IMG/VR virus record: IMGVR_UViG_3300035156_000206
Location: 124,001 to 188,000 of that record
Reading direction: 5' to 3' (one strand)
Length of the DNA stretch: 64,000 nt
Part shown: positions 10,201 to 57,868 of the stretch, one piece after another
Layout: each line of letters starts with the position of its first letter
Numbering within the stretch: position 1 is the first letter of the stretch
Notes under the pieces: generated by a model
Told to the model about the DNA's origin: nothing
Seen by the model: only the letters and a program-made list of their open reading frames with translations
The model's database searches: none
Made by a program: the position numbers and the translations under genes

Positions 10201-13200
10201 AGTGCATGGAAGTTGCGTGTGTCAATACGGTTACCACGGTTGTCATACACGATCGCCATAGCGCTCGAATCTTTCGAGTCGACGGTATTGAACTCTGATA
10301 CCACACCAGTTGGGTGCGTCAGCCAGATGTTGTTGCGGAATGGGTTCATCTCAATTTCACCCACCAGGTTAGCCATACTGTTGGTGCGGCTGACATTGCT
10401 TGCGTTCAGGTACAGTGTATCGATGAAGCTCTCAACTTCGAACTGCCAAGTGATCTGGCGGTTGTTGGAATCATCATACTCCAACACACTGCTGTCATTG
10501 AATACGATACCTTGATCTGTCAGGTACAATGAATAACCATCAACAAAGTCAACCACGTTCTGGATACCAGTAATAGGCACAGCGGTGCTGAACGAACGCA
10601 GGTCACGCTTGTTCACAGAGAAGTGTTTCCACAGAACTGGAGTGTGCTTACCTTCCAGTGAGTAGAATGTGCTTGTCAGCTCAGCCACGCTGTATACACC
10701 TGAACCATTTGTGACCAAGTTGATGTTGTGCCCGATAAGAGCTTCTTCCTTGCTGTTCGCCAGCATGAAGGTGGTGTCATTTACGGGAATGATGAAGTAG
10801 TATGTGAGATCATCAATGGCGTTAGGCAGCAAGCCTTGTACGCCAAGGTCGAATACAACGGGCGAACCAGCTACCCATCCAGACAATTCAATGGTACCAT
10901 TAACCATCGAGAAGGTGTTTGTTGCCAGGTCAGACGTGACGCGGTATTTCTTGACGCCATAGTAGAACGCGGTACGAGCTGCTGGGCAATGTGTTGCCAC
11001 ATCAAACTTCCAGTCTCGTCCTGCACCCATAGGGATCTCACGTGGGCTACCTGCTTGAGCAATCGATGCATATAGAGCATCAACCCAAACATCACGCACG
11101 TGGCGTGCAGTCTTTACCTCAACTGAGTAGTCATTAGGAGTCATCTCAAACAGACCTGAGTCGATTGAGAGTGTATTGTCGATCACAAAACTACCAACGC
11201 TGTAGCACAGCTGGGTGGTCCATGATGTCCAAGCACGCTTGAATTCACTTGCATTCAGGTCCAGAGCGTTGTAACGGAAGAAGTTGACGAACAGTTGGTT
11301 AACACCATCAAACAATTGTGTTACGCCATTGTTGTCTGTATCGCCGTGGAAAATCACATCGCGGTGCGACAGAACTTTGCTCGTGCGGTTACAAACTTCC
11401 AAGCCATTGACAGAAGTGAATTCTTCACCAAATGTGTAGTGCGTGAAGCGAATTGGATCAAGACGGAACATCGAACGCATCTCAGCGTACTTGTAGTCCA
11501 GTGTTTTCTTCCAGGCGCGCTCATGCAGTGCATCCTGACCAAAGTAGAAGTTGTTGCTTGCGATATCCGCAGTTGCTGGCATTACAGTCAGCAGAGCAGG
11601 GTAGTCAGCATACAATTCCACATCTTCAGCACTAGATGGTTCCCAGTATGGAGGGAACAGATCATCTGGACCATAACCATCTACGGTAGTGTGACTGAAT
11701 TGGTTGACCGGTACTTGTGGTACTGGTGCAACGGACCATGGCTCGACAGGCAAGATACCAAAATTGATGTTTGCCCACATATCAGTATTCCAACGACGAC
11801 CTTGAGTAGCACCGTCGTAATGGAAATCCCACCATGTTGGCTTTTGCTCGAAGCCTTGCAGTTTCCATGGCTCCAGATGAGGATATGATGTTCCGTACAG
11901 TGACTGATAAATTGCATCCCAACGTACTTCACCAGTCAAGACTGTCGAGTAGTTCCATGTGAATGCATCAGTGATATCGAAGTCACCACGGTAAGGCGCA
12001 GTGATCCGATTTGCTTTGCAGTATTCTTCGAACTCTGTTTGCATCAAGGCGGCAAATTGTCCAGCATCCACCTCTGGCAGATTGTCGATCCACAGGTCGC
12101 CCTCAGGAACACTATCAGCTAAGCGTTGCTCAATACGCAGCAGAACACTGGCGACAACATCTACCAGGTCAAATTCTTTCCACAGTACGTCAGCAGCCAG
12201 GGTAGTTTCTTCCCAAGCTGAGTTAACATTCTGGTACACCAGCTGAGTGATCGGGTTCAGATACATGGCCCCTGCTGGGTACACACGTGCATCCGGGATT
12301 GATGTGGTTACTGCAATCGCGCTGAAGCGGAACAACTGATCCCTTGTTGCATTGTACCACATTTCGCCTGGTTGAGCATCAAATGCAGACACGTATGGTT
12401 GCTGTACGCCATTTGGATACAGGTTCAGTGTCTTGATGATGTTGGCTTTAGCTACAGCACTGGTGATGCTATTCAGCTCATCCAAACTGCGGTGACCGTC
12501 GTGGTGAACCATTTCCAAGATGCCACGTTTGTCATCACGGATGTATTGTGGTGTCGATTTGCCGCTCATGCGCAGGTACGGCAGGGTGGCGATCCAGTTG
12601 GTGATAGCACCACGGGTCGTTACGCTGCTATCACCATAGATGCGTGACAGTGCAGTATCATTGCGCAGGGTAGTGAGCACTTTGCCTTCAATGAAACCAA
12701 TCAAGTCACCTACAGCACCATTGTCTAGGGAGTTCAGCGAAGCAACGATATTTTGCTCTACGTTCTCACGCACACGCACCAGCAGCTCGTTGTATTGAGT
12801 TGCCGCGAATGCCAGGATCGAAGGCAAGTTAAAGTTGCTGCTGATCAGGGACGAAACAAAATTATCGAATGAGTAGCTGTGCTCTTTAATTGTTCCACCC
12901 AGAGCATAGTTGATATTTTCCTGCAGACGGTACGAATTCGATGGAGTGAGGTTCACGCCATAGATCGAAGGGTCAGCAGGAGGCTGGTTATCGACAATCG
13001 ACTTGAAGTGCAGGAACAGCTCTGAGTAGCTCAGTTGGCGACGGCACTCGTGGTGCGCGTTCTTCATCAGTTGCTGAGGGATCTCATATACGCCATCAGG
13101 GTCTTCGTTGCCAACTGGCATACGGTCTGCATTTACTTTGGTTGGAACATACAGGGCTGCATTGCTCCACACAGAAGCAGTTGTGCCATCATCCGAGTTG

Positions 13201-14963
13201 ATGTAGAAGCGCAGGGTGTCATCTGCAGCGACTAAGTCGATATCAAATGTGAACTCTTTGGTCAGTGTGTTGTGCTTGATGCGGGAACCGAAATCGGCAT
13301 CAACGTCTGCTGTGCTATCTTCCGTAAATGTGACGATGCTTGTCGATTGGTTCAGAGCATTGCCCTTAACATCAACAACATTGAACAGTGGGTACTGATT
13401 GCGAGCGGTCTTGTATTGTTCTTGCTTACGGTATTTGATCAAGCAACGCAGTTCCAGAGGTGCATCGTCATCTTCCGATACACGCACCATGACCATCTCT
13501 TTACCTTGGTCTTCTTCAGCGATGGCATTTGGGTAGATCTCGACAACGTCACCAGCACTGAGTGGTTCAGTAAAACGAATGCGGTAGATTGGAAGTTCCG
13601 TGTAGGTTCCATACTGGCGGCGACCGTTCAAGTAGACGCGAGCTAACCCACCATCAAACAGGTACATTGTGGTTAGTGCAAAATCAGTCTGGCCTTCAAT
13701 CGCAGTGAACTGCTCGCCATTGTTGCCTTGGTACGCTAATGCTGGTTCCATTGTAGGCAGTGGTTGTCCCAGTTCAACCAACATCCAGTGATTGAACAGC
13801 CCTTTCCAATCATCGCCCAAGCTGGTTGTAGCGAATGGCAGAACGGTTCCAGAAGGATTGTCTGTTGTCAGATTGCCATCAACGTGGATGACGGTCACAT
13901 CACCTTCATAGAAGTAATCAACGCTGAGAGCATTCCACTTGCCGTTGTACAGTTCCGATCCTTCGATAGTAAATGGTTGATCCACACTAAGCTTGCTAGT
14001 TTGGTCGCCAGCAACAGTAATCGTGTCGTCATCACGACTTGATGCAACAACAGGCATACGATCAAACAATTCATTACGAGCTGGGCCTGTGGTGTTGATT
14101 TCCCAAGGGAAAGAAGCCGAGCGGCGGTACTGCCACACTTGTGGACGGTATGTGTATTCAGTCAGCTGGATGTTGTCATTGTACTCAATGATTGGCATCT
14201 TGGCTTGCTTGACGAGTGACAGATCGGCAACATCCAGACGGTGGATCCATTTGTTCTGGATAGCCCAATCAGATGTCAGCACGAACATACCTTCCATTTC
14301 ACCTGGCAGTTGTGCGAAGATATATGGAGGGTGAATTGGGTCCGCGATGATGGTCGTGAGGTTTGGGATAGAGATTCGTTGGTCTGCAGCCACGAAGGTG
14401 TTCACAGCATTCAACGCAAACTCAATATCAGCCCACAGAGCCAGCTTATCGTCAGCCGATGGGTAGTGCGAAGCCATCTGGCTCAACTGTGCTTGCAGCT
14501 TCGTCAGTTTGTTTTCAATGACGACGTACTCTGGATCGGTTTCACTTGACCAGTAGTATTCATTGTAGTTGGTAATCTTGTCGAGGTTGATAGGCAGGGC
14601 GTAATTGAACTGCTCAGCATTCTGCCACTCTTGGACACGTGACGTATCAATGCCTAGCTGCTCACAGAGGCGCTTAATATCTTTGTATGTAGTGATTTGG
14701 ACTTCCGAAGCGGCGCTATTTTTGATAGCTGGCTGCAATTGGAATGCCTGGTCATATGTGCTTGGTTCAACAATTTGATCATCCTGTGAGGATGTCTTGC
14801 GTTGTCCAATGGTGCCGATTACGCGCTGAAGTTCCGGCTTTGTGTAGAATCGATTGAATGTGGTCTCTGCTAGCGCCTTGGATAACGGGTTCTGATGGAT
14901 AGCAGGCAGCAGATTGTGCACGTCCGGACGACCCAGCTTGTAATCGCTATTATTTTGTGACAT
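7197..14963 (-). CDS. Very large baseplate wedge protein (gp7-like), 2588 aa
   Basis: Size; position after the gp6-like gene; HLEPWKLQGF and FYKGMIKAKGT motifs; late promoter upstream. Confidence 0.7.
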   Translation of the reverse strand: MSQNNSDYKLGRPDVHNLLPAIHQNPLSKALAETTFNRFYTKPELQRVIGTIGQRKTSSQDDQIVEPSTYDQAFQLQPAIKNSAASEVQITTYKDIKRLCEQLGIDTSRVQEWQNAEQFNYALPINLDKITNYNEYYWSSETDPEYVVIENKLTKLQAQLSQMASHYPSADDKLALWADIEFALNAVNTFVAADQRISIPNLTTIIADPIHPPYIFAQLPGEMEGMFVLTSDWAIQNKWIHRLDVADLSLVKQAKMPIIEYNDNIQLTEYTYRPQVWQYRRSASFPWEINTTGPARNELFDRMPVVASSRDDDTITVAGDQTSKLSVDQPFTIEGSELYNGKWNALSVDYFYEGDVTVIHVDGNLTTDNPSGTVLPFATTSLGDDWKGLFNHWMLVELGQPLPTMEPALAYQGNNGEQFTAIEGQTDFALTTMYLFDGGLARVYLNGRRQYGTYTELPIYRIRFTEPLSAGDVVEIYPNAIAEEDQGKEMVMVRVSEDDDAPLELRCLIKYRKQEQYKTARNQYPLFNVVDVKGNALNQSTSIVTFTEDSTADVDADFGSRIKHNTLTKEFTFDIDLVAADDTLRFYINSDDGTTASVWSNAALYVPTKVNADRMPVGNEDPDGVYEIPQQLMKNAHHECRRQLSYSELFLHFKSIVDNQPPADPSIYGVNLTPSNSYRLQENINYALGGTIKEHSYSFDNFVSSLISSNFNLPSILAFAATQYNELLVRVRENVEQNIVASLNSLDNGAVGDLIGFIEGKVLTTLRNDTALSRIYGDSSVTTRGAITNWIATLPYLRMSGKSTPQYIRDDKRGILEMVHHDGHRSLDELNSITSAVAKANIIKTLNLYPNGVQQPYVSAFDAQPGEMWYNATRDQLFRFSAIAVTTSIPDARVYPAGAMYLNPITQLVYQNVNSAWEETTLAADVLWKEFDLVDVVASVLLRIEQRLADSVPEGDLWIDNLPEVDAGQFAALMQTEFEEYCKANRITAPYRGDFDITDAFTWNYSTVLTGEVRWDAIYQSLYGTSYPHLEPWKLQGFEQKPTWWDFHYDGATQGRRWNTDMWANINFGILPVEPWSVAPVPQVPVNQFSHTTVDGYGPDDLFPPYWEPSSAEDVELYADYPALLTVMPATADIASNNFYFGQDALHERAWKKTLDYKYAEMRSMFRLDPIRFTHYTFGEEFTSVNGLEVCNRTSKVLSHRDVIFHGDTDNNGVTQLFDGVNQLFVNFFRYNALDLNASEFKRAWTSWTTQLCYSVGSFVIDNTLSIDSGLFEMTPNDYSVEVKTARHVRDVWVDALYASIAQAGSPREIPMGAGRDWKFDVATHCPAARTAFYYGVKKYRVTSDLATNTFSMVNGTIELSGWVAGSPVVFDLGVQGLLPNAIDDLTYYFIIPVNDTTFMLANSKEEALIGHNINLVTNGSGVYSVAELTSTFYSLEGKHTPVLWKHFSVNKRDLRSFSTAVPITGIQNVVDFVDGYSLYLTDQGIVFNDSSVLEYDDSNNRQITWQFEVESFIDTLYLNASNVSRTNSMANLVGEIEMNPFRNNIWLTHPTGVVSEFNTVDSKDSSAMAIVYDNRGNRIDTRNFHALRQDTITHIAATNQILDGAQTDNFMLVPDNVPFGGVHAYFDEYEHVLMFNPYTISNALVFDSFLGVAVSRLQAYFEKQQDSTKRPNIGGFVLKDGKFVQNYEYTTSNILKYYDTFTVNENSDFVNYARRMLGYTPNATYMTNTNVTPKSQFLFYKGMIKAKGTTGSIEAFTNSKHFQSAAVDEFWAYRAFDFGDNRPDVHYTMNLVPQDTISSHAKIQFVATPENTVQPYFTKVPMSDVSRWPNFPAQAASLSDSYALFGTVAKTNAQVSIQLIGARYIAFHTPGDVITVYQPVGAERSRTTGIAAGVGSVITMTGQTYLPNSGALNVFINGALRTVNVDYTEISDTSIQVIGNFGANAVVVIVPHVSTFVEGVHYHRLTNGMIQMVAPASNVWVTTRAVDYATLAPIHVYDEKAKTVVQELPAWDPIAGIHQATLAQYVDTYAKADPAVYNLSPSAITNGTTKFWNKPEVGNVWLDTNSFDYVSYKALHLTTNEKLVNWGKMEEWSDPAVYQWVESTVAPKDFKNGTPRSEVYSRSRVQFTATVSSTALNLGVVHGFSIGDDIVINADTLPHPLKEKTVYTVGAGSTFTTVVVADRAGVVIPLTMPGEGVITVSPATFKGAWTKVVPMVEHYYTININGSTLTTGLPVGSEFAMFADGVFVQDGPVLAGGVIDIEPETMLAFADSTRVRLTVIRKTGIIDGLLTTVPADLDLTPASEQSYVGYPHTKMDHVAVNGVSREPLYYFWVRGMAETIDSARTITTSTLEKLVSVNDRPYVICMNEVLVNGESRLSQLVLAGTAGIVSEPNRYTLRIRKNYTLRHQLNGSDGSMLKPTHAEWIMFRQNQDQHIDRSLWNMVTEAVIGHTIADADIAVPSLDRTIYDSVNGTSTRFGIGAGQTFVDGTEALETILLVLNSPEIDFEPIDIDYFLENHKMNTTVDLLAFMNDLYDSFPAKHVNQLFFAVMMDALANIDVDYSGSLMKTSAISINGTTPLNVNGEFDE

Positions 14964-24393: not shown

Positions 24394-25014
24394 ATGGCAC
24401 GACCTAAAAAAGTAGTAACAATCGATGAAGTCATTCAAGATGCACCAAACATGGATGATCTGTATGAAGTTGATCCAGAGCAGTTCCTAGCTGCAGCAGT
24501 GCATGGAGATGCAATCGATCCTGAGCTGGCTACTCTGTTGGACGATGAGCCTGAAGTTGAAGAGCCGGTGGTCGAAGAAGAGGTGATGAAGCCAATTAAG
24601 GCCAAGCGCGTCAAGAACTACATCAACAACGCCGACTTGCTGGTACAGTTAGCGATCAGCAATGCAAATGGTGAGATGAGCAAGGAACTGGTCAAAATGT
24701 TCCAGACCCTGTGTGACCGTTACGGCGCCAAGGCAAACTTTGGTGGCTACTCGTACATCGACGATATGAAGGCATATGCAATGTACATGCTCGTGCGCAC
24801 ATGGAAGGCTTTCAAGTGCGAGAAAAGCCAGAACCCATTTGCTTTCTTCACCCAGTGCATCAAGCACAGTTTCATCCAGTGTCTCAACAAGGAACGCAAC
24901 GAGCGTGACATTCGGGACCAGCTACTGATTGATGCTGGTCTGAATCCTTCCTACTCCTTTGGAGGTGGTGATTCAGATAGCTCTGGTGGCGGTGGTGAAG
25001 ACAGCTACGATTGA
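24394..25014 (+). CDS. Late-transcription sigma factor (T4 gp55-like)
   Basis: NYINNADLL, NFGGYSYIDDM, SQNPFAFFTQCIKHSFIQCLNKE; adjacent to gp47/gp46 as in T4. Confidence 0.9.
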   Translation: MARPKKVVTIDEVIQDAPNMDDLYEVDPEQFLAAAVHGDAIDPELATLLDDEPEVEEPVVEEEVMKPIKAKRVKNYINNADLLVQLAISNANGEMSKELVKMFQTLCDRYGAKANFGGYSYIDDMKAYAMYMLVRTWKAFKCEKSQNPFAFFTQCIKHSFIQCLNKERNERDIRDQLLIDAGLNPSYSFGGGDSDSSGGGGEDSYD

Positions 25015-26720: not shown

Positions 26721-26897
26721 ATGACATTTGATGACTATGTAGCGGCCGTGGATGTTTGGGTGCTGGAAGTGTTCACCACAGGATTGGACCATGACGATCT
26801 GGAGTACGTTATGGCTATGATGGATATTAAGATGTTACCCGAGTCGTGTGCTGCGGAAGTTGTTAAACAAAGAATGAAAGAGTGTGAAGATGATTGA
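26721..26897 (+). CDS. Small acidic hypothetical protein
   Basis: GGAGGG RBS; fills the gap between gp47 and gp46. Confidence 0.6.
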   Translation: MTFDDYVAAVDVWVLEVFTTGLDHDDLEYVMAMMDIKMLPESCAAEVVKQRMKECEDD

Positions 26898-29394
26898 TAG
26901 TACCGATATGTTAGAATTACTGGAGCTGCGCATGCGCAACTTCCTATCGTATGGCAACAACTATACGATCATCGACCTGACGACACCTGGCACCACTCTG
27001 ATCGTGGGAGAAGACTTGGATAGTGGTACCGGGTCAGCAAACGGTGTTGGTAAGACGACCATCCTCAATGGCATCGTCTATGGCTTATATGATAAGCCAC
27101 TGTCGAAAGAGATCAAGCTCGACCACCTGATCAACAACATCAACAAGAAGAATATGGAAGTGTCTCTGACCTTCCGCAAGCATGGTGATACATTTGTTGT
27201 TACGCGCTTCCGCAAGGGCAAGGACGGCAACACTGTCATCCTGACCAAGAATGGTACCGCTATCACGCGTGACAGCGTAGACCAGACTAACAAGTTCATC
27301 GAGACGGTGATTGGTTACTCATACGACCTGTTCGTCCGCATTGTTGTGTTCTCTGCAGGACACGATGCATTCTTAGACTTGCCTACGTCTGGGGCAAAGA
27401 AGCCTCTTCAATCAGACATCATGGAAGAGCTGTTCGACTTAACGTCACTGACGGAAAAGGCCGAGCGCGCCAAGAAAGAGATCAAGGCCAATGAGCAGCG
27501 CATGGAAGTTATCAAGGCTCAGATTGAACAGATCGAGCGTGAAGCTGAACGCCACGCTGCACAGATTGCAACCACACGCCGGCTAATCGGTGAATGGGAT
27601 GTTACACAGACAGGTAAGATTGCTCGACTCAAGGCTGAACTGGCTACTCTGGAAGGGATCGACTTCGAGAAGGAGCAACGACTCCACAAAGAGTTAGAGG
27701 CAAAGAAGCCGGCTCGCAAGGCATTGTGGGATGCGCGTGATCGTGCAGTCACGTGGGAAGCTTCTCACCAGATGAAGACGCTGCGTGTGATGAAGGATCT
27801 CAAGAAGCTTGATGGGATTGACTTCGACGCACAGTTGGAACTGCATCGTCAGTTGAAGCATGCCACGCAGCGCCACAAAGAGTTAGCCAGCACCTTCAAG
27901 CAGTACTCCAGCTTTGAAGAGACCAATAGTCTCAAGCTGTCATCTCTGGCCAAAGAAATCCAATCAATGGCCGATGTGGACTTTGATGCTGAGAAGGCTA
28001 TCTTTACCCATTTGGCCGATAAGCAAGCATCTCTGAAGACCCTCAACACAGAGTTAGAAGAGATCGTCAGGGTCAAGGGTGAGAACTTAGTCACCTATGA
28101 AAAACTGAACACAGAGTCGAAGCACCTGTTCGATGCTACCTGTCCGTACTGTTTGCAGAACTTTGCAGGTGCTAAGGAGAAGGGTGAGAAGATTGGTGAT
28201 CAGCTAACTGAGCTGCAGGGTGGTCTCAAGAAGCACGACAGTAAGATCACAAAGACCAATAAGGCAATCTCTGCACTGGCTGAAGAGATTGAGGCACTCA
28301 AAGGTAAGGCGATCGTTAAGTCCTTGGCGGATCTGGTCAAGATGCAATCTGATAAAGAGTCACTGGATTGTCGTTATGCTGATGCAAGTGATGCAGTCAA
28401 TCCTCATGCGGTAGCCCTGCAAGAGCTGATGCAATCGGACAAAATTGAATCTGACCAAGTTGAGTTGGACATTGCAGAACTTGCTACAAAGATCAAGGCC
28501 CGTAAGGACTGCATTACTGTGGATGACGCTGATGAGCTCGCTCAGATGAAATCAGATAGCGTCTCATTGAAGGCTCGCTTGGAGGAGCTGACGGAGGAAG
28601 CTAATCCGTACCTCAAGGAGATCAATGCACTTGGTGTGAAGATCAAAGCGACCGATGACATCTTGGAGGTATGTGATCCAATCATTAATCGACTGACCAG
28701 TGAGATCAAGGACATCGAGGATCAGATTACAGTGGATGACATTGAGGACTTGTTGGAGACAAAGAACAACAGTGCCACAATGGAAGCCAGGATCAAGGAG
28801 ATGTCAACAGAGGCCAATCCATACGAGACTACTTTGGCGGAGTTGGAAGCGGTTGAGTTGGATGAGGCAAAGTATGATTTCATCAACGAGATGACTAAGG
28901 TAGTGGATCACCACAAGTTCCTGGTCAAGCTGTTGACAAAATCTGACAGCTTTGTTCGGAAACAACTGATCGCTGAGAATATTCCGTTCCTAAATAAACA
29001 ACTGCGTGAGAATCTGAAGGACTTAGGATTGCCACACCGTGTAGAGTTTACTGATACCATGTCAGCATCGATCTCGCAGTTGGGTCGTCCTTTAGAGTTT
29101 GGTAACCTGTCTCGTGGTCAGAAGGCACGTGTGAACTTGGCACTAGCTTGGGCATTCCACGATGTTCTACAAAGCATGCACGGGCCCGTCAATTTCTGTT
29201 TACTTGATGAGGTGCTTGATGTAGGATTGTGTTCAGTAGGAGTCATTATGGCTGCGAAGATGTTGAAGAACAGAGCGAAGCGTGACAAGTTGACGATGTT
29301 CATCATCTCACACAAGCAGGAAGTGGACAGTATCTTCGATCGTACAATGAAGATTCAGTTGCACAAGGGCTTCTCCAAGATTGCTACAGAGTAA
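26884..29394 (+). CDS. Recombination ATPase, Rad50/SbcC-like (T4 gp46)
   Basis: NFLSYGN, Walker A NGVGKT, CPYC zinc hook, LSRGQ signature, LLDEVLD, ISH. Confidence 0.93.
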   Translation: MKMIDSTDMLELLELRMRNFLSYGNNYTIIDLTTPGTTLIVGEDLDSGTGSANGVGKTTILNGIVYGLYDKPLSKEIKLDHLINNINKKNMEVSLTFRKHGDTFVVTRFRKGKDGNTVILTKNGTAITRDSVDQTNKFIETVIGYSYDLFVRIVVFSAGHDAFLDLPTSGAKKPLQSDIMEELFDLTSLTEKAERAKKEIKANEQRMEVIKAQIEQIEREAERHAAQIATTRRLIGEWDVTQTGKIARLKAELATLEGIDFEKEQRLHKELEAKKPARKALWDARDRAVTWEASHQMKTLRVMKDLKKLDGIDFDAQLELHRQLKHATQRHKELASTFKQYSSFEETNSLKLSSLAKEIQSMADVDFDAEKAIFTHLADKQASLKTLNTELEEIVRVKGENLVTYEKLNTESKHLFDATCPYCLQNFAGAKEKGEKIGDQLTELQGGLKKHDSKITKTNKAISALAEEIEALKGKAIVKSLADLVKMQSDKESLDCRYADASDAVNPHAVALQELMQSDKIESDQVELDIAELATKIKARKDCITVDDADELAQMKSDSVSLKARLEELTEEANPYLKEINALGVKIKATDDILEVCDPIINRLTSEIKDIEDQITVDDIEDLLETKNNSATMEARIKEMSTEANPYETTLAELEAVELDEAKYDFINEMTKVVDHHKFLVKLLTKSDSFVRKQLIAENIPFLNKQLRENLKDLGLPHRVEFTDTMSASISQLGRPLEFGNLSRGQKARVNLALAWAFHDVLQSMHGPVNFCLLDEVLDVGLCSVGVIMAAKMLKNRAKRDKLTMFIISHKQEVDSIFDRTMKIQLHKGFSKIATE

Positions 29395-29400
29395 CCAATA

Positions 29401-29423
29401 GGCGACCTTCGGGTCGCCATTTC
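29401..29423 (+). terminator. Hairpin/terminator
   Basis: ggcgacc-TTCG-ggtcgcc followed by attt. Confidence 0.55.
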
Positions 29424-29438
29424 CCGTAGGAGGAATGT

Positions 29439-29771
29439 ATGACAATGGATCAATCGATGTGGGAAGACGTGCATGAACCGTCCGAGGAAGAGATAGCAAC
29501 AGGAAGACGCCTCCAGGCCGAGGCAAAGGCGAGATGGGATGCATTAACGCCAGAGCAGAAAGCCAAGAAGGAAGAGGAGCGGCAAGCACGATTTCGCGCG
29601 CATTCAGAATTTTATGAACGTTTGGGTTTGAGGTTGATTGTGCCTACAACTATACCTCAAACTGAGCTCATTGTCCAACCAATGGTCGAACCTCAAGGAT
29701 TGGTGTTCGCAATGCGAGCACGATACAATTGGGAGATCCAAAAAGGCGAAACTGATGAAAAACCAGTTTGA
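29439..29771 (+). CDS. Small protein carrying a major-capsid Gol-region-like segment
   Basis: AGGAGG RBS; C-terminal LRLIVPTTIPQTELIVQPMVEPQGLVFAMRARY aligns with the major capsid protein. Confidence 0.7.
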   Translation: MTMDQSMWEDVHEPSEEEIATGRRLQAEAKARWDALTPEQKAKKEEERQARFRAHSEFYERLGLRLIVPTTIPQTELIVQPMVEPQGLVFAMRARYNWEIQKGETDEKPV

Positions 29772-30081
29772 ACAATACTACGATGTCGTGTACGGTATCG
29801 ATTCGGGTGTCAGTGTTTCTCAAGCAATGAAAGAGATCATCAGATGGTCCATGCAGGATCGGACTATTGAAGGTGTCATTGCCAAGAACCCTGATCTGGA
29901 AGGCGCTGACTTGAGTCGTCTAGATACACACCTGATCATTGCAATACTTCGTTCTACCTACATCATCCATAACTATTTGGCGTGTTGGGAGGCCAAAGTT
30001 GATGAGGCTGAGTTAGTATTGATCGGACGAAGCCTTAACCCTAGACAATTGTTACGCGGACTAAAGAGATTTCCTAAATGA
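29755..30081 (+). CDS. Hypothetical protein
   Basis: AAGG RBS; overlaps both neighbours in an operon. Confidence 0.6.
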   Translation: MKNQFEQYYDVVYGIDSGVSVSQAMKEIIRWSMQDRTIEGVIAKNPDLEGADLSRLDTHLIIAILRSTYIIHNYLACWEAKVDEAELVLIGRSLNPRQLLRGLKRFPK

Positions 30082-30374
30082 ACATGTTTGTTATTTGTTT
30101 CCCCTTCAGTGGAGCTAAAGACCAATCTGGTGAATATGCACGTATGGAGTACCTATTCTTTCGGGATGAGGCGCCTGCATTAAAGTGCTTACGTGAGCAG
30201 GATCACAAGGACGGTCATGAGTATTATGAAGTGCCTTGTTTCCATCGTGGCGGATACGTCCGTCGTGAAAAGATCCTTTGGGCGTGGGAACCACAAGATA
30301 TGGTTCAGGCTGAAGACTACGCCAACCACTATGGGCTAAAGTTGATTGAGTTTGACCGTTCGTGGTTAGAATGA
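30078..30374 (+). CDS. Hypothetical protein
   Basis: ATGA overlap with the previous gene. Confidence 0.6.
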   Translation: MNMFVICFPFSGAKDQSGEYARMEYLFFRDEAPALKCLREQDHKDGHEYYEVPCFHRGGYVRREKILWAWEPQDMVQAEDYANHYGLKLIEFDRSWLE

Positions 30375-30445
30375 TCCTAAGCATGTGATATTCCTTTGGT
30401 ATTTGCGGGCCTTAAATAGCCTCAATACCAATACAGGAGTATCAC

Positions 30446-30931
30446 ATGATTATCTTAGGCATCGATCAATCTTACACCAGCTCAGGTTTAGTTGTTGTGG
30501 ACGGCGATAAATTGTTGTACAGTGGCGTCTTTAAGACGCCCAAGGACATGGACATCTTCGAACGCGCTTGGCGCATCGGTGAACATGTACTAGAAAAGAT
30601 AGAAGAATTCGGTGTCGAGGCGGTTGCGATTGAAGGTCTTGCTTTTGGTATGACTGGAAACGCTACGCGAGACCTAGCAGGACTACAGTTTGTGATTGTA
30701 TCGAAGATCCAGTTTGTTGCTGGAAAGCTCGTTGCTGTCATATCACCAAAGTCTCTGAAAGTGTTCGCGACGGCTAATGGTAAGGCAACGAAGAAAGAGA
30801 TGATTGCTGCAGTACCCGAGGATGTAAATTCTATTTTCAAGGGTCAGGGGTATAAACTAACGACAGGTCTTGCTGACTTATCGGATGCTTATTTCCTGGC
30901 GCAATATATCAAGAAGCAGGATACAAATTAA
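30446..30931 (+). CDS. ruvC: RuvC-like Holliday junction resolvase
   Basis: ILGIDQS, AIEG, NGKATK, DLSDAY catalytic motifs; AGGAG RBS; late promoter. Confidence 0.88.
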   Translation: MIILGIDQSYTSSGLVVVDGDKLLYSGVFKTPKDMDIFERAWRIGEHVLEKIEEFGVEAVAIEGLAFGMTGNATRDLAGLQFVIVSKIQFVAGKLVAVISPKSLKVFATANGKATKKEMIAAVPEDVNSIFKGQGYKLTTGLADLSDAYFLAQYIKKQDTN

Positions 30932-30940
30932 GTTGCGAGA

Positions 30941-31192
30941 TGTTGACCCGTGTAGTGCGGGTGAAAACCTTCGGGTATGACATTGTGGACGCAATACGAA
31001 TGATGGATGTGCGCAACATCCGGTACTAGCTCGTATTGTGGGTCCCACTAAATTGGTTATGCAACCGCGAGCGTAGGGATACAAGCAGCGCGAGACCATA
31101 TCCATCTAGCCACTCCTGCGAGTGATAGTTAAACATCTCCTGACCATTGGGGTATGACAGTATGCCTGTCCGGCCCGCACCCACGGTCGATA
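30941..31192 (+). ncRNA. Putative structured non-coding RNA of unknown class
   Basis: Long-range stem 30941-30962/31173-31192; ACC-UUCG-GGU tetraloop; nested stems GCAATACGA/TCGTATTGT, GGATGT/ACATCC, CACTC/GAGTG, GACAG/CTGTC; several G-U pairs; no credible ORF. Confidence 0.55.
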
Positions 31193-31243
31193 GGGGGATT
31201 GTTTCATTGTTTGAATTAATTGATAGTCGGCAATCAAGATAGA

Positions 31244-31434
31244 TTAACTGATCGAATATCTGAGGACGAACGCAGTGAGGACGAAGATGGAGATCAGATG
31301 AGGCGAAGCCGAGTTAAATGATTCAACCGGTTCTTTTGCAGCTAGCTGGATTATGTGTCTGTCGTTACACTCCAGACTTAATATAGATGATTGTGAAACT
31401 CGCTACGCTCGCCATCACAATCATCTATATTAAG
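31244..31434. repeat. ssDNA-type hairpin cluster with a 20-bp perfect inverted repeat (31377-31396/31415-31434)
   Basis: GNA-triloop hairpins closed by tandem GA/GA pairs on both strands; arms CTTAATATAGATGATTGTGA / TCACAATCATCTATATTAAG. Confidence 0.75.
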
Positions 31435-31436
31435 GG

Positions 31437-31631
31437 TTATTTTAATCGGCCGTGTTCTGTGAGTACTTTGGATTCAGCAATATCGTACTCTATTCGAGCC
31501 TTTTCCGATTCAGCTGATGCAACTGCCAACTGAGCTTCCGCTTTCGCCAATGTATCTTCCACAGATGGTTCAGATTGGCTTCCACCACAAGCAACCAAAC
31601 ACAATAGTACTAGAACTGGTAGCGTCTTCAT
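31437..31631 (-). CDS. Small putative lipoprotein
   Basis: MKTLPVLVLLCLVA-CGG lipobox; ATGA overlap with the upstream gene. Confidence 0.65.
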   Translation of the reverse strand: MKTLPVLVLLCLVACGGSQSEPSVEDTLAKAEAQLAVASAESEKARIEYDIAESKVLTEHGRLK

Positions 31632-32350
31632 TGTACTGACTCCAACGATAAGTGTTTGTCCTCAACCGTCTTGGCATAGTCATACAACTTCTCAATATAC
31701 TTGTCACGACGCAGAATTTTGAATGCCAGGTTCTCAACCGAGAACTCACCGTCACGATCCAAGCCCATCTTCCTCATCTCTCGCAATCGGGTTTTTAATT
31801 TCTCGATCGTAGTGAGATTACACACTTTATTATGGATTATCCCGTCGATAGACGATTTCCATTTATCTGCCTTACTGATTACATACGAGTCGTTAATTTC
31901 GGGATTGGATTTCTTAGGCTTGACCAACCACTTGTTCCTCATAATGCTATACACACCTGACGATACATGAGGTTCCTTCTCACCTTGGACATACAACTCA
32001 ACGGGGAAGCCTTTGATCTTGATATCATGCTCAAGGTTCCATAGCTGCTTCTTAGCGTTGAATAGCTCCAAAGCTACCTCTTCATTCTCACAGCGTGACA
32101 AGTCTGCCATGATGTGAAGATCGACGTCTGACTGATCGTGCCACGTATAGTTGGCGAGACTCCCAGTTACAATCATATCAACCACAATTAGTTCACTTGA
32201 GTCCACAAAGTCGATGAACTGTTTTGCAATCGACTTCAGTGCAGTCTTAATCTCGGGCTTCATGACGGTCTCTTCCCATACAGCATGGTTGAGGTGACGC
32301 TTCTCATCAAGAGCGAACGCTGTTTCATTCAGGTATTGTTTAAATTTCAT
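31628..32350 (-). CDS. Pol-beta superfamily nucleotidyltransferase
   Basis: TGSLANY...SDVDLH (GS..DxD), VELYVQ; late promoter; MKFKQYLNE N-terminus. Confidence 0.75.
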   Translation of the reverse strand: MKFKQYLNETAFALDEKRHLNHAVWEETVMKPEIKTALKSIAKQFIDFVDSSELIVVDMIVTGSLANYTWHDQSDVDLHIMADLSRCENEEVALELFNAKKQLWNLEHDIKIKGFPVELYVQGEKEPHVSSGVYSIMRNKWLVKPKKSNPEINDSYVISKADKWKSSIDGIIHNKVCNLTTIEKLKTRLREMRKMGLDRDGEFSVENLAFKILRRDKYIEKLYDYAKTVEDKHLSLESVQ

Positions 32351-32394
32351 TTGGATTATCCTTGTGTGCATCCTATTTATGGTACAGACAAAAG

Positions 32395-36587: not shown

Positions 36588-38282
36588 ATGACAAAATGGA
36601 CTGGCTATTTTAAGGTTGTTCAACCAACAACCGATACAACAACCGTTACCGATAACCAGGCAATGGATGGTACCGAGTATGGAAACTACTCGTGGTATCA
36701 ACGTCTGGTACAAGGTTCGGCATCACGGATCAGCCGCTACAGCGAATATGATGTGATGGATAGCGACGTTGAAGTCGCTCGTGCTTTGGATATCATTGCA
36801 GAGGAGATGACTTCCAACAACGAGAAGACCGACTTGCCAATCAACATCGATGTCCAAGCAGAAGACATCGAACACATGGCTCCAACCACTTTGATGACTC
36901 TCCGTGCCGCTTTGCGCTACTGGAGTTCTGTTCACGACTGGGAAAATCGTCTGTTCAAGATTGCTCGCACTACTGCAAAGTATGGCGACTGCTTCTTCCG
37001 TCGTGGCAAAGATCCTCGTGCTAAGTGGACCTTCATTCATCCGAAGATGGTTGTTGGTGCTGTAGTCGATGAGCAAGATGTTACCAAGATTCTCGCATAC
37101 CAAATCAAAGTCGATATCAACCGTCCTGTGTCAAGCGCTGGACAGATCCCTGTTGGTCAGCAGTATGACAGTGAGATCGTTCCTGCACACGAAATCGTTC
37201 GGTTCTCGCTGAACGATGACATGTCGTCCGTTGCACCTTTCGGTGAATCGATTCTGTCGCCTGTGTATCGTGCACACAAACAAAAAGAGATGCTGGAAGA
37301 CGCGATCATCATTTACCGTACGGTACGTGCTCCTGAACGGCGCGTATTCTACATTGACGTGGGCAAGATGCCACCAGCAATGACCAAGAAGTACCTCGAG
37401 CAAATCAAAAATGAGATTCGGCAGCGTAAGATCCCATCCGCCAATGGTGGACAAACAAACGTCGACTCGGTCTATAATGCCCAATCAATGTCAGAAGACT
37501 TCTACTTCGCACAACGTGCTGACGGTAAAGGTAGTCGTGTAGAGACTCTCCCTGGTGGAGCTGGTCTTGGTGAATTGGCTGACTTGGATCACTTCCTCAA
37601 CAAAGTCTTCCGCGGTCTTCGTATTCCTATCTCTTGGATGAATGAAGCAAACGGTGGTGGTGCAATCTTCAATGATGGCAAGACTGGCCAAGCGTACATC
37701 CAAGAGATTATCTTCGGTAAGTATGTTGCTCGTCTGCAAGGGTACATTGACCGTGTGCTGGATGTTGAATTTAAGAAGTACCTTCGTGACAACCGCATTG
37801 TGGTTGATGAGAGTATGTACAAGCTGCGTTTGCCAGAGTCGACCAACTTTGCAAAGCTGCGCCAAGCTGAAGTAGATGGACAGATGTTGGCTACCTATGC
37901 AAGTGCATCGGAGATCCCACACATGTCGAAGCGTTATGGCTTAGAGCGTTATGCTCAGTGGTCTGAGGATGAGATCCTGGCAAATGAGAAGAAGGTCATG
38001 GAAGAGCGTGGCATCCCAGCTGACGCACCAAACCGCATGCAATTGATCTACGGTGATCCAAATACTACACCAGCGGACTTCTCATTGCCAGGTGGCGGTG
38101 GAGCAATGGGTGGTGGCGGAGCGATGCCTTTAGGTGCTGGTGAAGGTACCGGAGATCCATTAGATCCAGGTGCAGATGCTGACGGCAAAGACACATCGAC
38201 TACTGATTTAGCAGACAAACAAACCACGCGTGATGCGCCGGCTCCTGGCGCAAAACCAGGTGGGGTTGGCGGTAAGCCATAA
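36588..38282 (+). CDS. Portal vertex protein (T4 gp20-like)
   Basis: EDAIIIYRTVRAPERRVFYIDVGKMP, EDFYF, VETLPGG. Confidence 0.95.
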   Translation: MTKWTGYFKVVQPTTDTTTVTDNQAMDGTEYGNYSWYQRLVQGSASRISRYSEYDVMDSDVEVARALDIIAEEMTSNNEKTDLPINIDVQAEDIEHMAPTTLMTLRAALRYWSSVHDWENRLFKIARTTAKYGDCFFRRGKDPRAKWTFIHPKMVVGAVVDEQDVTKILAYQIKVDINRPVSSAGQIPVGQQYDSEIVPAHEIVRFSLNDDMSSVAPFGESILSPVYRAHKQKEMLEDAIIIYRTVRAPERRVFYIDVGKMPPAMTKKYLEQIKNEIRQRKIPSANGGQTNVDSVYNAQSMSEDFYFAQRADGKGSRVETLPGGAGLGELADLDHFLNKVFRGLRIPISWMNEANGGGAIFNDGKTGQAYIQEIIFGKYVARLQGYIDRVLDVEFKKYLRDNRIVVDESMYKLRLPESTNFAKLRQAEVDGQMLATYASASEIPHMSKRYGLERYAQWSEDEILANEKKVMEERGIPADAPNRMQLIYGDPNTTPADFSLPGGGGAMGGGGAMPLGAGEGTGDPLDPGADADGKDTSTTDLADKQTTRDAPAPGAKPGGVGGKP

Positions 38283-38313
38283 ATACTCTAAATCAACATA
38301 AATGGAGTCTGAT

Positions 38314-38964
38314 ATGAATCAACAAATGCTTATCGAAACGTTGGCACCTGGCATGGCAAACATGATCAGTGAGTCAACTCAAGATGGTAAGAATACGTGG
38401 CTTTCAGGCGTCTTCATGCAGGCAGATATTCGTAATCGTAACAATCGAGTCTACCCAATGCGTGAGATCGCTGAAGCGGTCAACAATGCGAATCTCATCA
38501 TTCAAGAGACGAACGGAATCTTCGGAGAGTTGGATCATCCTCAGACGCTGTCTATCAATATGGATCGTGTATCGCATGTGATCACAAGCCTCCGTATGGA
38601 AGGTGCCAACGCAGTCGGCAAGATGAAGATCTTGTGCGGCCAAAATGGTACACCATGTGGTAACATTGCAAAAGCTCTGATCGAGAGTGGCGTCCGCGTT
38701 GGCGTTAGCTCACGTGGTGCTGGTGCAGTGAATGAGAGTGGTGAAGTGAATGGTTTCAATTTTGTGACCATTGATATCGTTGCCACACCTAGTGCACCAG
38801 GTGCGCGTCCTAACTCGTTGATCGAGTCACTGGAAGCAAATGCATCGGGACGCCTGGTTCTGACCCTGGCTGAGCAAATGCAACAAGATGAAGCTGCACA
38901 AAAGTACTTCAAAGCGGAAATCATGCGCTTTGTCAACCTCAACTTATTTGCCAAGAGCAAGTAA
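38314..38964 (+). CDS. Prohead core protease (T4 gp21-like)
   Basis: RNRNNRVYP, GELDHP, GVSSRGAG, DIVATPSAPGA. Confidence 0.95.
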   Translation: MNQQMLIETLAPGMANMISESTQDGKNTWLSGVFMQADIRNRNNRVYPMREIAEAVNNANLIIQETNGIFGELDHPQTLSINMDRVSHVITSLRMEGANAVGKMKILCGQNGTPCGNIAKALIESGVRVGVSSRGAGAVNESGEVNGFNFVTIDIVATPSAPGARPNSLIESLEANASGRLVLTLAEQMQQDEAAQKYFKAEIMRFVNLNLFAKSK

Positions 38965-38986: not shown

Positions 38987-39418
38987 ATGGACTTTAAAGA
39001 ACAACTGGGCACGCTTATCGATGCCATGTTAGCAAACAAGGATGACGAAGCTAAAGCTGCGTTCCACGCCTACTCAGTCGCCAAGACTTCAAAGCTGGTA
39101 GCCGAAGGCGAAATGCCTAAGGGATTCGTTCCGTTCAAGAAAAAGGGCGAGAAGGACGAAGACAAAGACGACAAGTCTGCCAAGAAGGATGACGGCAAGT
39201 CAGACGACAAGGATGAAGATGACAAAAAGGACAAGCCTAAAAAAGGCGTGAACCCTTTTGCCAAGAAGGATGACGACAAGTCTGATGACAAGAAGGACGA
39301 CGACAAAAAGGACGACGACAAAAAGGACGACAAGAAATCGGACAAGAAGGATGACGACAAGTCAGACGACAAGGCCGACAAAAAGTCAAAAAAGGATGAC
39401 AACAAGGACGAAGAGTAA
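38987..39418 (+). CDS. Highly charged prohead core/internal peptide protein (gp67-like)
   Basis: K/D low-complexity repeats (KKDDDK); lies between protease and scaffold; AGGAG RBS. Confidence 0.65.
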   Translation: MDFKEQLGTLIDAMLANKDDEAKAAFHAYSVAKTSKLVAEGEMPKGFVPFKKKGEKDEDKDDKSAKKDDGKSDDKDEDDKKDKPKKGVNPFAKKDDDKSDDKKDDDKKDDDKKDDKKSDKKDDDKSDDKADKKSKKDDNKDEE

Positions 39419-39534
39419 TCATTCGTATTGAAACAACTAACACCTTGGTTTAACAGGGTTAGTTGTTTGTTTAGGTGGTCAGCTTCGGCTGCCGCCTAAA
39501 TATGTTTAATAATCAATGGATTAGGAGATTTAGC

Positions 39535-40455
39535 ATGGATGAATTACTGAAGCAATTGTTCGAATCTGAAGTTCTTTCAGAAGAAACAAAAACTCAACTG
39601 CAAGAAGCGATGGCCTCTCAAATGGCTGACATGATTGCAGAAACCAAAACTGCCACCGAAGAAGCTGTTCGTCTGGAACTGGCTGAGCAATGGGTCACTA
39701 CTCGTGAAACATTGATCGAAGCTATCGACACCAAAGTGTCCGATCTGCTGGAAGCCGAAATCACTGAACTGCACAGCGACATTGCTGCATTCCGTGACCT
39801 GGAAGTTGAATACGCTGGCAAGCTGACAGAAGCAAAACAAGAAATGGCTGTTCAGGTAAAATCTGATATGGCTCAACTGATCGAAAAGCTGGACGCGTTC
39901 CTGGAACTGCGCATCGCTGAAGAGTTCGCTGAACTGAAGACATCAATCGACGAAGCCAAAAAGAATGACTTTGGTCGCCGTGTTGTTGAAGCCTTCATGG
40001 GTGAATACCAAGCCAAGTTTGTCGACGAAAACGAAGTACATGCAAAACTGGAAGAAGCAGAAGCTAAACTGCAAGCTGTTACGGCAAAACTGAACGAAGC
40101 ATCGTCAACACGTGCTAAGCTCGAGCGTACCATCAAGCTGGAAAACCTCCTGTCACCTCTCGCCGGTACGCACCGTCAGCTGATGGAAACTATTCTGTCG
40201 ACTGTCAAAACCAACGAATTGGACAAGGCTTACACCAAGTTCATCGGTCGTGTCATGAAAGAAGATGCTGCTCCAACCAATGCCCAGGAAGACAAAGTAC
40301 TGGCCGAAGGTAAAGAAGTACCTGCTGCTGACAAGGCAACCGTAGTAAAAACCGGCGATTCTTTAACAGAATCCCAAAACCTGAACGCCACTGTTTCTGC
40401 GCTGTCTGACGACGAAAAGCGTAAATTACAGCGTATGGCTGGCATTGCTTACTAA
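39535..40455 (+). CDS. Prohead core scaffold protein (T4 gp22-like)
   Basis: Acidic coiled coil; FGRRVVEAF; directly upstream of the major capsid gene. Confidence 0.85.
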   Translation: MDELLKQLFESEVLSEETKTQLQEAMASQMADMIAETKTATEEAVRLELAEQWVTTRETLIEAIDTKVSDLLEAEITELHSDIAAFRDLEVEYAGKLTEAKQEMAVQVKSDMAQLIEKLDAFLELRIAEEFAELKTSIDEAKKNDFGRRVVEAFMGEYQAKFVDENEVHAKLEEAEAKLQAVTAKLNEASSTRAKLERTIKLENLLSPLAGTHRQLMETILSTVKTNELDKAYTKFIGRVMKEDAAPTNAQEDKVLAEGKEVPAADKATVVKTGDSLTESQNLNATVSALSDDEKRKLQRMAGIAY

Positions 40456-40489: not shown

Positions 40490-41815
40490 ATGGACTTACA
40501 AACAAAATGGGCAGAAGAAAAAGTTGCCTTGCTGGAAGGCCTGGAAGGCAAACAACGCGAGACCGTTGGACAGGTTCTGGAAAATCAACGCAATTACGTT
40601 CTGAACGAAACAGCAGCTGAAGGTTCGACCTCAGCAAGCAACATCGCTGGTTTCCGTAAGATCATGATTCCAATGATTCGTCGTATTATCCCTGGCACTA
40701 TTGCTCAGGAACTCGTTGGTGTTCAGCCAATGGAAGGCCCAGTTGGCCTGGTTTACTCGCTGCGCTTTAAGTACGCCGAGTCAGTTACTACTTCGACTTC
40801 GCCAAACGGTGACATCGTTGCTGGTGACGAAATCTGGGGTAACGCAAACCCAATCCGTCGTTTCTATTCGAGCGGCACTGGCGTAGCACAAGTTGCTGGC
40901 GCTGGCGGTATGGGTGCACCTGCACCAGGCGCAATCACTGGAACAGCAAACGGTAACGCATGGGGTTCGACCCTGGACGCGGCTGCTGGTTGTACAGTTG
41001 GTGGTGCTGGTTCGTTCCTGGAAGGTTCAGGCGGTCGTAAGTCGAGCTTCGAGATCGTTTCGCAAGCTGTTGAAGCTGGTACGCGTAAGCTGCAAACTGG
41101 TTGGACTATCGAAGCAATGCAAGATGCTAAGAACCAACACGGTATCGACATCGAGTCAGAAATGACCAAAACGATCTCTGCACAAATCGTGCAAGAAATC
41201 GACAACGAAATCATCACGGACTTGACAGCTCTGGCTGGCACCGTAGCAACATGGGACGGTGCTCTGCCATCAGCTCCAGGCTACTACCGTCCAACATTCA
41301 TCGGCGATCGCTTCGCGAACCTCGGTGTGATGATCTCGTACGTTGCGAATGAAATCGCTCGTAAGACCCGTCGTGGTCCAGGTAACTTCATCGTTGTTTC
41401 GCCAATGATGTTGACCGTTCTGCAACAGGCTGTTAAGTCCCAGTTCGCACCAGCAGTTCGTGGTTCGTTCAAAGGCCCTAACAACACCCAATTGGTTGGT
41501 ACCCTCAACGGTACAATCAAGGTCTACAGCTACCTGTGGAACCAAACACAATCGACCGACGTTGGTGGTACAGGCGACGACACGATTCTGGTTGGCTACA
41601 AAGGCGGTGACGGTGAATCGGACGCAGGTTACTTCTACTGCCCATACATCCCACTGATGAGCTCAGGCGTTATCACTAACCCTGTGACCTTCCAGCCAGT
41701 CGTATCGCTGATGACTCGTTACGGTAAGACATACTTTACCAACCCAACGACTTCGCTCGGCAACTCGGCTGACTACTACGGTAAGATCAACGTCACTAAC
41801 CTGTCGTTCGCTTAA
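40490..41815 (+). CDS. Major capsid protein (T4 gp23-like)
   Basis: IRRIIPGTIAQELVGVQPM, RKLQTGWTIEAMQD, EIDNEII, GYFYCPYIPL, MTRYG. Confidence 0.97.
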   Translation: MDLQTKWAEEKVALLEGLEGKQRETVGQVLENQRNYVLNETAAEGSTSASNIAGFRKIMIPMIRRIIPGTIAQELVGVQPMEGPVGLVYSLRFKYAESVTTSTSPNGDIVAGDEIWGNANPIRRFYSSGTGVAQVAGAGGMGAPAPGAITGTANGNAWGSTLDAAAGCTVGGAGSFLEGSGGRKSSFEIVSQAVEAGTRKLQTGWTIEAMQDAKNQHGIDIESEMTKTISAQIVQEIDNEIITDLTALAGTVATWDGALPSAPGYYRPTFIGDRFANLGVMISYVANEIARKTRRGPGNFIVVSPMMLTVLQQAVKSQFAPAVRGSFKGPNNTQLVGTLNGTIKVYSYLWNQTQSTDVGGTGDDTILVGYKGGDGESDAGYFYCPYIPLMSSGVITNPVTFQPVVSLMTRYGKTYFTNPTTSLGNSADYYGKINVTNLSFA

Positions 41816-57824: not shown

Positions 57825-57868
57825 GGTGGTGGCGGCCATAAATAATACACACGAAAAGGGTCACACAT

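Follow-up and report, generated by a model that had tools for sequence, protein, structure and literature searches.

A stand-alone, diverged copy of the capsid Gol segment in a small orphan gene of an uncultured jumbo phage

What is a short piece of the major capsid protein doing in a gene of its own, behind the recombination genes of a jumbo phage? The question is posed by ORF110, a 110-codon frame in a window of 64,000 nucleotides comprising bases 124001-188000 of a 291,967-bp IMG/VR virus record. Capsid-linked immunity is known from Lit, CapRel, Avs7/8/10, TIR/Thoeris, and Pycsar and CBASS escape mutants, and a sequence-only reading of the locus had taken ORF110 for a captured capsid epitope, fused to an unrelated charged helix, that might serve as a decoy for such defences. 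Capsid proteins are frequent immune triggers (PMC9712102, PMC12803255, PMC13728456). The T4 activator of Lit is Gol, a 29-residue region within the first quarter of the capsid protein gp23 that binds domains II/III of EF-Tu and renders EF-Tu cleavable by Lit; binding inhibits the EF-Tu GTPase and prefers the GDP form, the first ~100 residues of gp23 bind EF-Tu more stably, and Gol is the most conserved gp23 region across T4-related phages (PMC3014915).

The annotated ORF110 frame is the only one of six with positive codon-usage log-odds, and its score of 0.12 is similar to those of its two small neighbours, ORF108 and ORF98, and below those of core genes (0.36-0.54). Its TAGGAG motif and spacing are as at the major capsid protein (MCP) gene and other genes. 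ORF110 was called independently at 108 aa (JGI) and 110 aa (Logan/ENA), and the Logan/ENA calls include the two neighbours as well. A 59-kb Logan contig spans positions 27500-31500 with zero differences, its reads probably from the same sample, so the locus is not an assembly chimera. A biocrust metagenome, probably the source sample, was the sole run found by a run search to contain the window, with no variants at the locus. The hairpin between gp46 and ORF110 was flagged on the minus strand only in a terminator scan; a proper T-run is absent, so a role in RNA stability or weak attenuation is more probable than one in termination. T4-core genes of the genome include those for a gp55-like late sigma factor, gp47-/gp46-like nuclease/ATPase and RuvC, together with portal gp20, prohead protease gp21 and the gp23-type MCP, whose closest cultured counterpart in the relevant segment is that of the Xanthomonas jumbo phage XacN1, followed by those of Pseudomonas, Erwinia, Pectobacterium and E. 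coli jumbo phages.

Table 1. Features of the ORF110 locus and of the parent capsid gene, in positions of the window
Feature	Position	Strand	Basis or remark
gp46/Rad50-like ATPase, upstream slot anchor	26884-29394	+	Pfam AAA_23, SMC_N; conserved in relatives
GC-rich UUCG-tetraloop hairpin	29401-29418	+	Sequence; between gp46 stop codon and ORF110
Ribosome-binding site TAGGAGG	29427-29433	+	5 nt upstream of ORF110 ATG
ORF110, 110-aa orphan protein	29439-29771	+	Best frame by codon usage, independent gene calls, identical independent assembly
Charged helical hairpin, ORF110 residues 16-61	29484-29621	+	AlphaFold2 single-sequence model
Gol-like segment, ORF110 residues 64-105	29628-29753	+	Diverged copy of capsid N-arm end and first P-domain strand
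Gol-like core, ORF110 residues 64-96	29628-29726	+	Includes VQPM at 29673-29684
ORF108, small orphan	29755-30081	+	ATG overlaps ORF110 end by 17 nt
ORF98, third small orphan of cassette	30078-30374	+	ATGA overlap with ORF108
RuvC-like resolvase, downstream slot anchor	30446-30931	+	Pfam RuvC, PHROG 159; after gp46 in 3/4 relatives
Major capsid protein (MCP), gp23 type, parent family	40490-41815	+	Pfam Gp23 2.2e-91; T4 gp23 structures 9e-29
MCP residues 62-103, counterpart of ORF110 residues 64-105	40673-40798	+	BLASTP, Smith-Waterman and profile matches

ORF110 follows the gp47 (Metallophos) and gp46 (AAA_23/SMC_N) homologues and is followed by the RuvC-like gene. Among four relatives, gp46 was found in all and RuvC downstream of it in three (in the fourth it was not found downstream); in those three the gp46-RuvC gap measures 0.4-2.2 kb and holds unrelated cargo that differs in content and length. 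The gap of one relative (G003) carries a lipoprotein-like gene and TnpB/OrfB-like fragments, that of another (G004) a fibre-like 354-aa protein and a Gly-rich 250-aa protein, and that of the third (G002) is almost empty. The overlap between ORF110 and ORF108 suggests translational coupling. ORF108 has only a weak match, to a PHROG of unknown function, and ORF98 matched no Pfam or PHROG family. The three genes together read as a coupled cassette in an accessory slot with fast turnover, and such hypervariability is typical of accessory or counter-defence loci. Just downstream of RuvC, on the opposite strand, lie a 64-aa candidate Lpp/OprI-like alanine-zipper lipoprotein (31437-31631, weak, E = 0.006) and a 247-aa nucleotidyltransferase-domain protein (31628-32371) that share a 4-nt ATGA overlap (31628-31631). 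The largest ORF of the window, of 2,588 aa, is also on the minus strand (7197-14963).

Motifs of the type ATAAATA/CTAAATA/TATAAATA precede several structural genes, that of the capsid among them, by 30-60 nt (positions 40452, 38270-38290, 57840-57850, 60809, 48731 and 2969), as would fit T4-type late promoters recognised by the gp55-like sigma factor (24394-25014). No ATAAATA/CTAAATA-type motif occurs within 100 nt of ORF110, which is co-oriented after gp47/gp46. One CTAAATA lies inside gp46, at 28990. We take this synteny, with the missing late-promoter-like motif, as a hint that ORF110 may be expressed apart from the late capsid burst.

Residues 64-96 of ORF110 align without gaps to MCP residues 63-95, with 16/33 identities (BLASTP against the MCP, E = 1e-5). 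The Smith-Waterman score, 77, was exceeded among 1,962 six-frame ORFs only by those of the MCP itself and a gp24-like paralogue (next score 64), and was attained by 0/5,000 shuffles. The Pfam profile Gp23 (PF07068) gave ORF110 19.9 bits (E = 5.5e-4), below the gathering cut-off of 24.4 bits and with only positions 25-47 of ~376 matched; over the six-frame genome, the Gp23 HMM gave it E = 1.3e-4. An HMM built from 61 distinct MCP N-termini of IMG/VR relatives, hereafter the clade HMM, scored ORF110 at 29.2 bits. With a 36-column Gol-only HMM the score was 31.7 bits (E = 2e-8 across 3,773 genome ORFs), the next best non-MCP score being 13.4 bits for the gp24-like paralogue, with noise below, and hhalign against an MCP alignment returned a probability of 93.8% (E = 1.8e-7). 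Among the 100 ESM Atlas matches listed, 93 were PF07068 (Gp23) clusters, the top-ranked of which were short (63-74 aa); with scores of at most 0.81, we treat these as a lead only. A PDB sequence search with ORF110 gave no significant match.

The conserved N-arm/first-strand signature R..IP..I....VQPM..P.G.V..R..Y is present in ORF110. Judged by an 18-sequence alignment with distant MCPs, the protein keeps every invariant Gol column (P69, V79, Q80, P85 and R93) and four of six nearly invariant ones (R65, P81, M82 and Y96, with R66 and G78, before VQPM, lost); a seventh, E47, falls in the spuriously aligned N-terminal part of ORF110. The HK97-type body (P, A and I domains) is absent, and ORF110 therefore cannot serve as a subunit of the shell. 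The idea that ORF110, ORF108 and ORF98 are the pieces of a broken second capsid gene was ruled out, as the downstream ORFs have no Gp23 similarity.

Alignment to the T4 gp23 structures (PDB 6uzc, 5vf3) places MCP residues 62-95 at gp23 residues 98-131. ORF110 residues 64-96 align with gp23 99-131, ungapped, with 15/33 identities that include VQPM, P, G, VFA, RA and Y, and the two segments are thus equivalent in position. We take the boundaries of the T4 Gol peptide to be about residues 95-123, and mutagenesis by Copeland and Kleanthous in 2005 reportedly identified 13 critical residues in a 20-residue core. Although similar in sequence, T4 Gol is an internal part of a 521-aa late capsid protein, whereas ORF110 is encoded on its own, as a 110-aa protein, in a slot that is non-structural. 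In the unexpanded T4 prohead, residues 66-105 of gp23* form a disordered stretch that faces the scaffold core and later becomes the external N-arm, and residues 106-131 are the first ordered part, ahead of the I-domain linker equivalent to the E-loop (PMC9546572). In this layout, the copied piece takes in the N-arm end together with the first strand of the P-domain. The capsid context here is taken from such published T4 cryo-EM descriptions; an AlphaFold model of the MCP itself, from a 26-sequence alignment, was poor (pLDDT 44.5), with two propeptide helices at low confidence. For ORF110, AlphaFold2 predicted helices at residues 16-34 and 38-61, with pLDDT 80-91 in the hairpin, and a Gol-like tail that is strand-prone and of low confidence in isolation.

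The position of the segment within the protein bears on its origin. Positions 64-105 of the clade HMM align to residues 64-105 of ORF110, that is, at the same offset from the N-terminus. In jumbo-clade capsids (the phage's own MCP, XacN1, Deifobo and CBB) the motif starts at about residue 62-65; outside the clade, the segment starts at ~84 in a rhizobiophage and at 99 in T4, and VQPM lies at about residue 104 in S-PM2. The match of offsets could be a coincidence with a chance of roughly 4-8%. The shared offset favours a truncated 5' paralogue of a capsid gene over an internal epitope placed on an unrelated helix, and ORF110 probably descends, by 5' partial duplication, from the first ~105 codons of a clade-type (XacN1/Rak2-like jumbo) capsid gene. 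Its first 63 residues scored -0.9 bits against the MCP N-terminal HMM, equal to the shuffle median, and show no similarity to the capsid propeptide; the better reading appears to be that they have diverged beyond recognition from the capsid N-terminus. That the similarity to capsid arose by chance or convergence, without common origin, looks close to refuted and essentially excluded: the match is short (33-42 residues) and Gp23 falls short of its curated threshold, but the clade Gol profile separates ORF110 clearly from its runner-up over all genome ORFs, no shuffle matches its score, and the hhalign result and the colinear offset point the same way.

Much of the sequence-only reading thus stands. 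The gene is where and as it was described, and its TAGGAGG site, codon usage and prediction by two gene callers back it; its alignment with the phage's own major capsid exceeds chance, and the profile comparison with gp23 that had been proposed as a check proved significant. Its equivalence to the T4 Gol region (PMC3014915) was borne out by the alignment to gp23 99-131, and the slot after gp46 is indeed non-structural and, among relatives, hypervariable. What does not fit is the captured epitope. The remainder of the protein is modelled as a charged two-helix hairpin, as had been said, but its description as unrelated to capsid is at odds with the offset, which suggests a diverged capsid N-terminus, and a truncated 5' paralogue probably takes the place of an epitope fused to a foreign helix.

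We found no homologue of the whole protein in a word-indexed set of 5.8 billion proteins, by exhaustive phmmer against 1.84 billion protein representatives, by IMG/VR peptide patterns, or by tblastn against 50,697 phage records; these searches returned ORF110 itself, one spurious K/E-rich match, or capsid genes. The tblastn search with ORF110 hit 588 records at 588 places, one each, and the features listed there were capsid genes; with the MCP segment it hit 280 records at 280 places, again one each. An ORF110-like gene was absent from the 36 gp46 loci examined, and four closer relatives, searched as whole records (122-230 kb, capsids 62-73% identical), matched only at their capsid genes. As far as these searches reach, ORF110 is a singleton gene, present in a single copy in its genome, and may be a young gene without a fixed function.

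A survey for short Gol-only ORFs, suggested by the sequence-only reading, disclosed no such family among its best matches and lent the decoy or EF-Tu function no support. With an alignment as query and proteins of 60-190 aa as targets, it gave 909 matches, the best 120 of which were N-terminal capsid fragments (140-179 bits), with no ORF110-like gene among them; three cases on long contigs, all within head modules, were frameshift-split capsid genes (P0104, P0012) or lay at a contig end (P0089). Like ORF110, such split or truncated gp23 genes are short ORFs (100-200 aa) that contain the Gol motif. Unlike ORF110, they have a full propeptide, score 140-179 bits, and sit in a head module followed by the rest of the capsid gene or the contig end; ORF110 is stand-alone, its N-terminus is unrecognisable, and an intact capsid gene is present in the genome besides it. 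In a related phage, the capsid gene is split into overlapping ORFs of 130 and 325 aa in two assemblies (ENA ERZ724087 and Logan SRR3330205; L150:3001-4367, L151:810-2176), a pattern that may reflect a genuine split or frameshift or else a sequencing error common to both.

Other head-protein pieces recur in this genome, outside the window. A second short head-morphogenesis paralogue, of 134 aa (genome 67470-67874, +; L147:971-1375), is a truncated relative of the prohead protease gp21, whose gene lies at window positions 38302-38964; the two share 30% identity over 107 aa (E = 2e-10), and the short form scores 23 bits with Pfam Peptidase_S77, below the cut-off. The histidine of the gp21 'ELDHP' motif aligns to 'IDSGG' in the paralogue, and this loss makes the paralogue probably inactive. 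An acidic, Ala/Pro-rich ORF of ~400 aa (genome 115729-116985, +) contains 'ITEEAAAGSSSATAVAGF...ARRKVPGE', resembling the capsid's '...ETAAAGS...IAGFRK...IRRIIPGT' (putative protease site and start of the N-arm), and the MCP N-terminus profile gives it 13.9-15.4 bits; its product may be a scaffold or internal head protein that undergoes processing. The gp24-like paralogue (genome 119917-121155, +) is a full-length capsid relative (Pfam Gp23, 110 bits) whose Gol motif has drifted to VQPF..S.GLVY and lies far below ORF110 on the Gol profile. Like ORF110, gp24-type vertex proteins are taken to be products of capsid-gene duplication, but they have gone the opposite way: gp24 types keep the whole HK97 fold while the motif drifts (VQPF, 13.4 bits), and ORF110 has kept the motif (31.7 bits) and lost the fold.

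Compared with 26 clade MCPs, ORF110 keeps 11/18 clade-invariant residues within positions 62-95 (the Gol part) and at most 1/12 upstream (1-61; Fisher p = 0.007, in a test biased because the region was defined by where similarity had been found). At third codon positions ORF110 and the MCP are identical at 11/34, which is saturated, or random. Retention of residues against randomised third positions argues for selection on the Gol-like motif. Fold constraints cannot explain that retention, because the HK97 body is gone, but a shared binding interaction can. There was no DNA-level match of the segment to any capsid gene, and no capsid protein among the 1.84 billion representatives reached the 36-bit listing level against ORF110; with the saturated third positions, this indicates that ORF110 is not a recent copy of a sampled capsid gene.

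These data also bear on a rival reading, that ORF110 is a functionless or not-yet-functional relic, a partial capsid duplicate held open by chance in a recombination-prone slot, whose similarity to capsid persists because decay is incomplete or was captured from a capsid lineage not yet sampled. Such an origin would fit its singleton status, a fast-turnover slot with unrelated cargo in each relative (TnpB-like fragments included), the several other partial paralogues in the genome, and the weakly positive codon-usage score. However, the 110-codon frame is intact, has a canonical ribosome-binding site and is apparently coupled to the gene downstream; such uneven retention at saturated synonymous sites is not what uniform neutral decay would leave; and ORF110 clearly outscores the functional gp24-like paralogue on the Gol HMM. 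Taking both sides, we regard a relic as somewhat unlikely.

Our preferred reading, which we hold tentatively, is that ORF110 may be a soluble stand-in, or competitive mimic, for the N-terminal segment of unassembled capsid protein. Under this proposal, a charged two-helix hairpin would bear an exposed copy, 33-42 residues long, of the capsid N-arm end and first strand. The protein would be expressed from the gp47-gp46 transcription unit, with no dependence on the late capsid burst. From the invariants kept in the Gol part and lost upstream, we infer that some binding partner would recognise this linear segment on capsid protein that is newly made and not yet assembled, and that ORF110 would engage this partner in trans and so titrate or pre-occupy it. 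The leading candidate partner would be host EF-Tu, a defence that uses the EF-Tu-capsid-peptide complex (Lit type), or both. Three considerations favour such a partner: the slot is variable, no late-promoter-like motif occurs within 100 nt, and Gol, with EF-Tu, is to our knowledge the one linear capsid peptide documented as a ligand.

A different role, as an accessory of head assembly, is unlikely in our judgement, all its forms taken together. The capsid-like tail would dock on capsid protein, scaffold, prohead protease or portal, by strand complementation or through the core contact of the capsid N-terminal region, and would regulate or time assembly, enter the prohead, or poison the capsid of a co-infecting relative in a dominant-negative manner. 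Candidate scaffold genes lie at window positions 38987-39418 and 39475-40455. The T4 prohead lends this some plausibility, its N-terminal region up to residue 105 pointing toward the scaffolding core and residues 106-131 forming the first ordered strand (PMC9546572), as does the re-use of head pieces elsewhere in the genome, in the probably inactive protease paralogue and the acidic ORF with its copy of the capsid cleavage site and N-arm. Yet ORF110 lies ~7 kb from the head module, behind recombination genes and with no late-promoter-like motif nearby; it is missing from all the relatives that build the same capsid, and is thus dispensable for assembly; and inspection revealed no obvious (L/I)-x-E protease site in it.

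Still less probable is that ORF110 is a host-manipulating EF-Tu ligand whose tail binds EF-Tu-GDP and damps its GTPase, slowing host translation or excluding superinfecting phages. Its place among non-late genes agrees with this, as do the inhibition of the GTPase by Gol on domains II/III and its preference for the GDP form (PMC3014915), but stoichiometric inhibition is implausible for a protein that makes up 6-10% of the E. coli proteome, a figure cited in PMC12803255, and the phage itself needs translation.

A narrower version of the stand-in proposal, which we consider doubtful, makes ORF110 a decoy of the capsid 'pattern': a minimal, non-assembling copy of the N-terminal segment, made before the capsid burst, that would occupy EF-Tu, or an abortive-infection sensor dependent on capsid or EF-Tu, without activating it. 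The prohead protease is another known immune trigger, and by the same logic its truncated paralogue could be a second decoy. ORF110 does lie in a variable accessory region, the gp46-RuvC gap; recurrence across phages or linkage to defence systems was not seen in our surveys, in which ORF110 is a singleton. Since the Gol peptide activates Lit, a faithful mimic would trigger Lit and not blunt it, and the phage would gain only from a binder that does not license cleavage; an early, faithful mimic would harm the phage unless it bound without activation. CapRel and Avs7 recognise folded capsid surfaces and not a linear strand (PMC9712102, PMC12803255), CapRel reading the folded P-domain sheet and spine helix and not the linear N-terminal strand (PMC9712102), and one strand carried by a helical hairpin would probably not mimic such a surface for either.

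The closest parallels to a soluble capsid stand-in each differ from it. Like ORF110, the DNA mimic Ocr and antitoxin mimics such as ICP1 Gp145 are small accessory proteins encoded in variable regions; they imitate a ligand and thereby occupy a host protein (PMC13728456). Unlike ORF110, none of these described mimics imitates a capsid segment, and in the literature searched we found no capsid-derived decoy or capsid-imitating phage countermeasure. Bas11 Gp54, in the account of Zhang 2024 given in PMC13728456, is likewise small and non-structural, and it interacts with CapRel-SJ46, an immune protein that senses capsid; as presented there it is a trigger and, unlike ORF110, not a capsid homologue.

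New here are the colinear N-terminal offset, the uneven retention of residues and the true singleton status of the gene, and their weight is limited to one gene in one uncultured genome. ORF110 is an apparently selectively retained, stand-alone copy of the sole capsid segment known as a linear peptide ligand. As such, it bears on why the Gol segment is the most conserved part of T4-type capsids and on whether phages can buffer capsid sensing. If ORF110 instead proves to be an assembly factor or a relic, it would show jumbo phages recycling pieces of head genes into new small genes.
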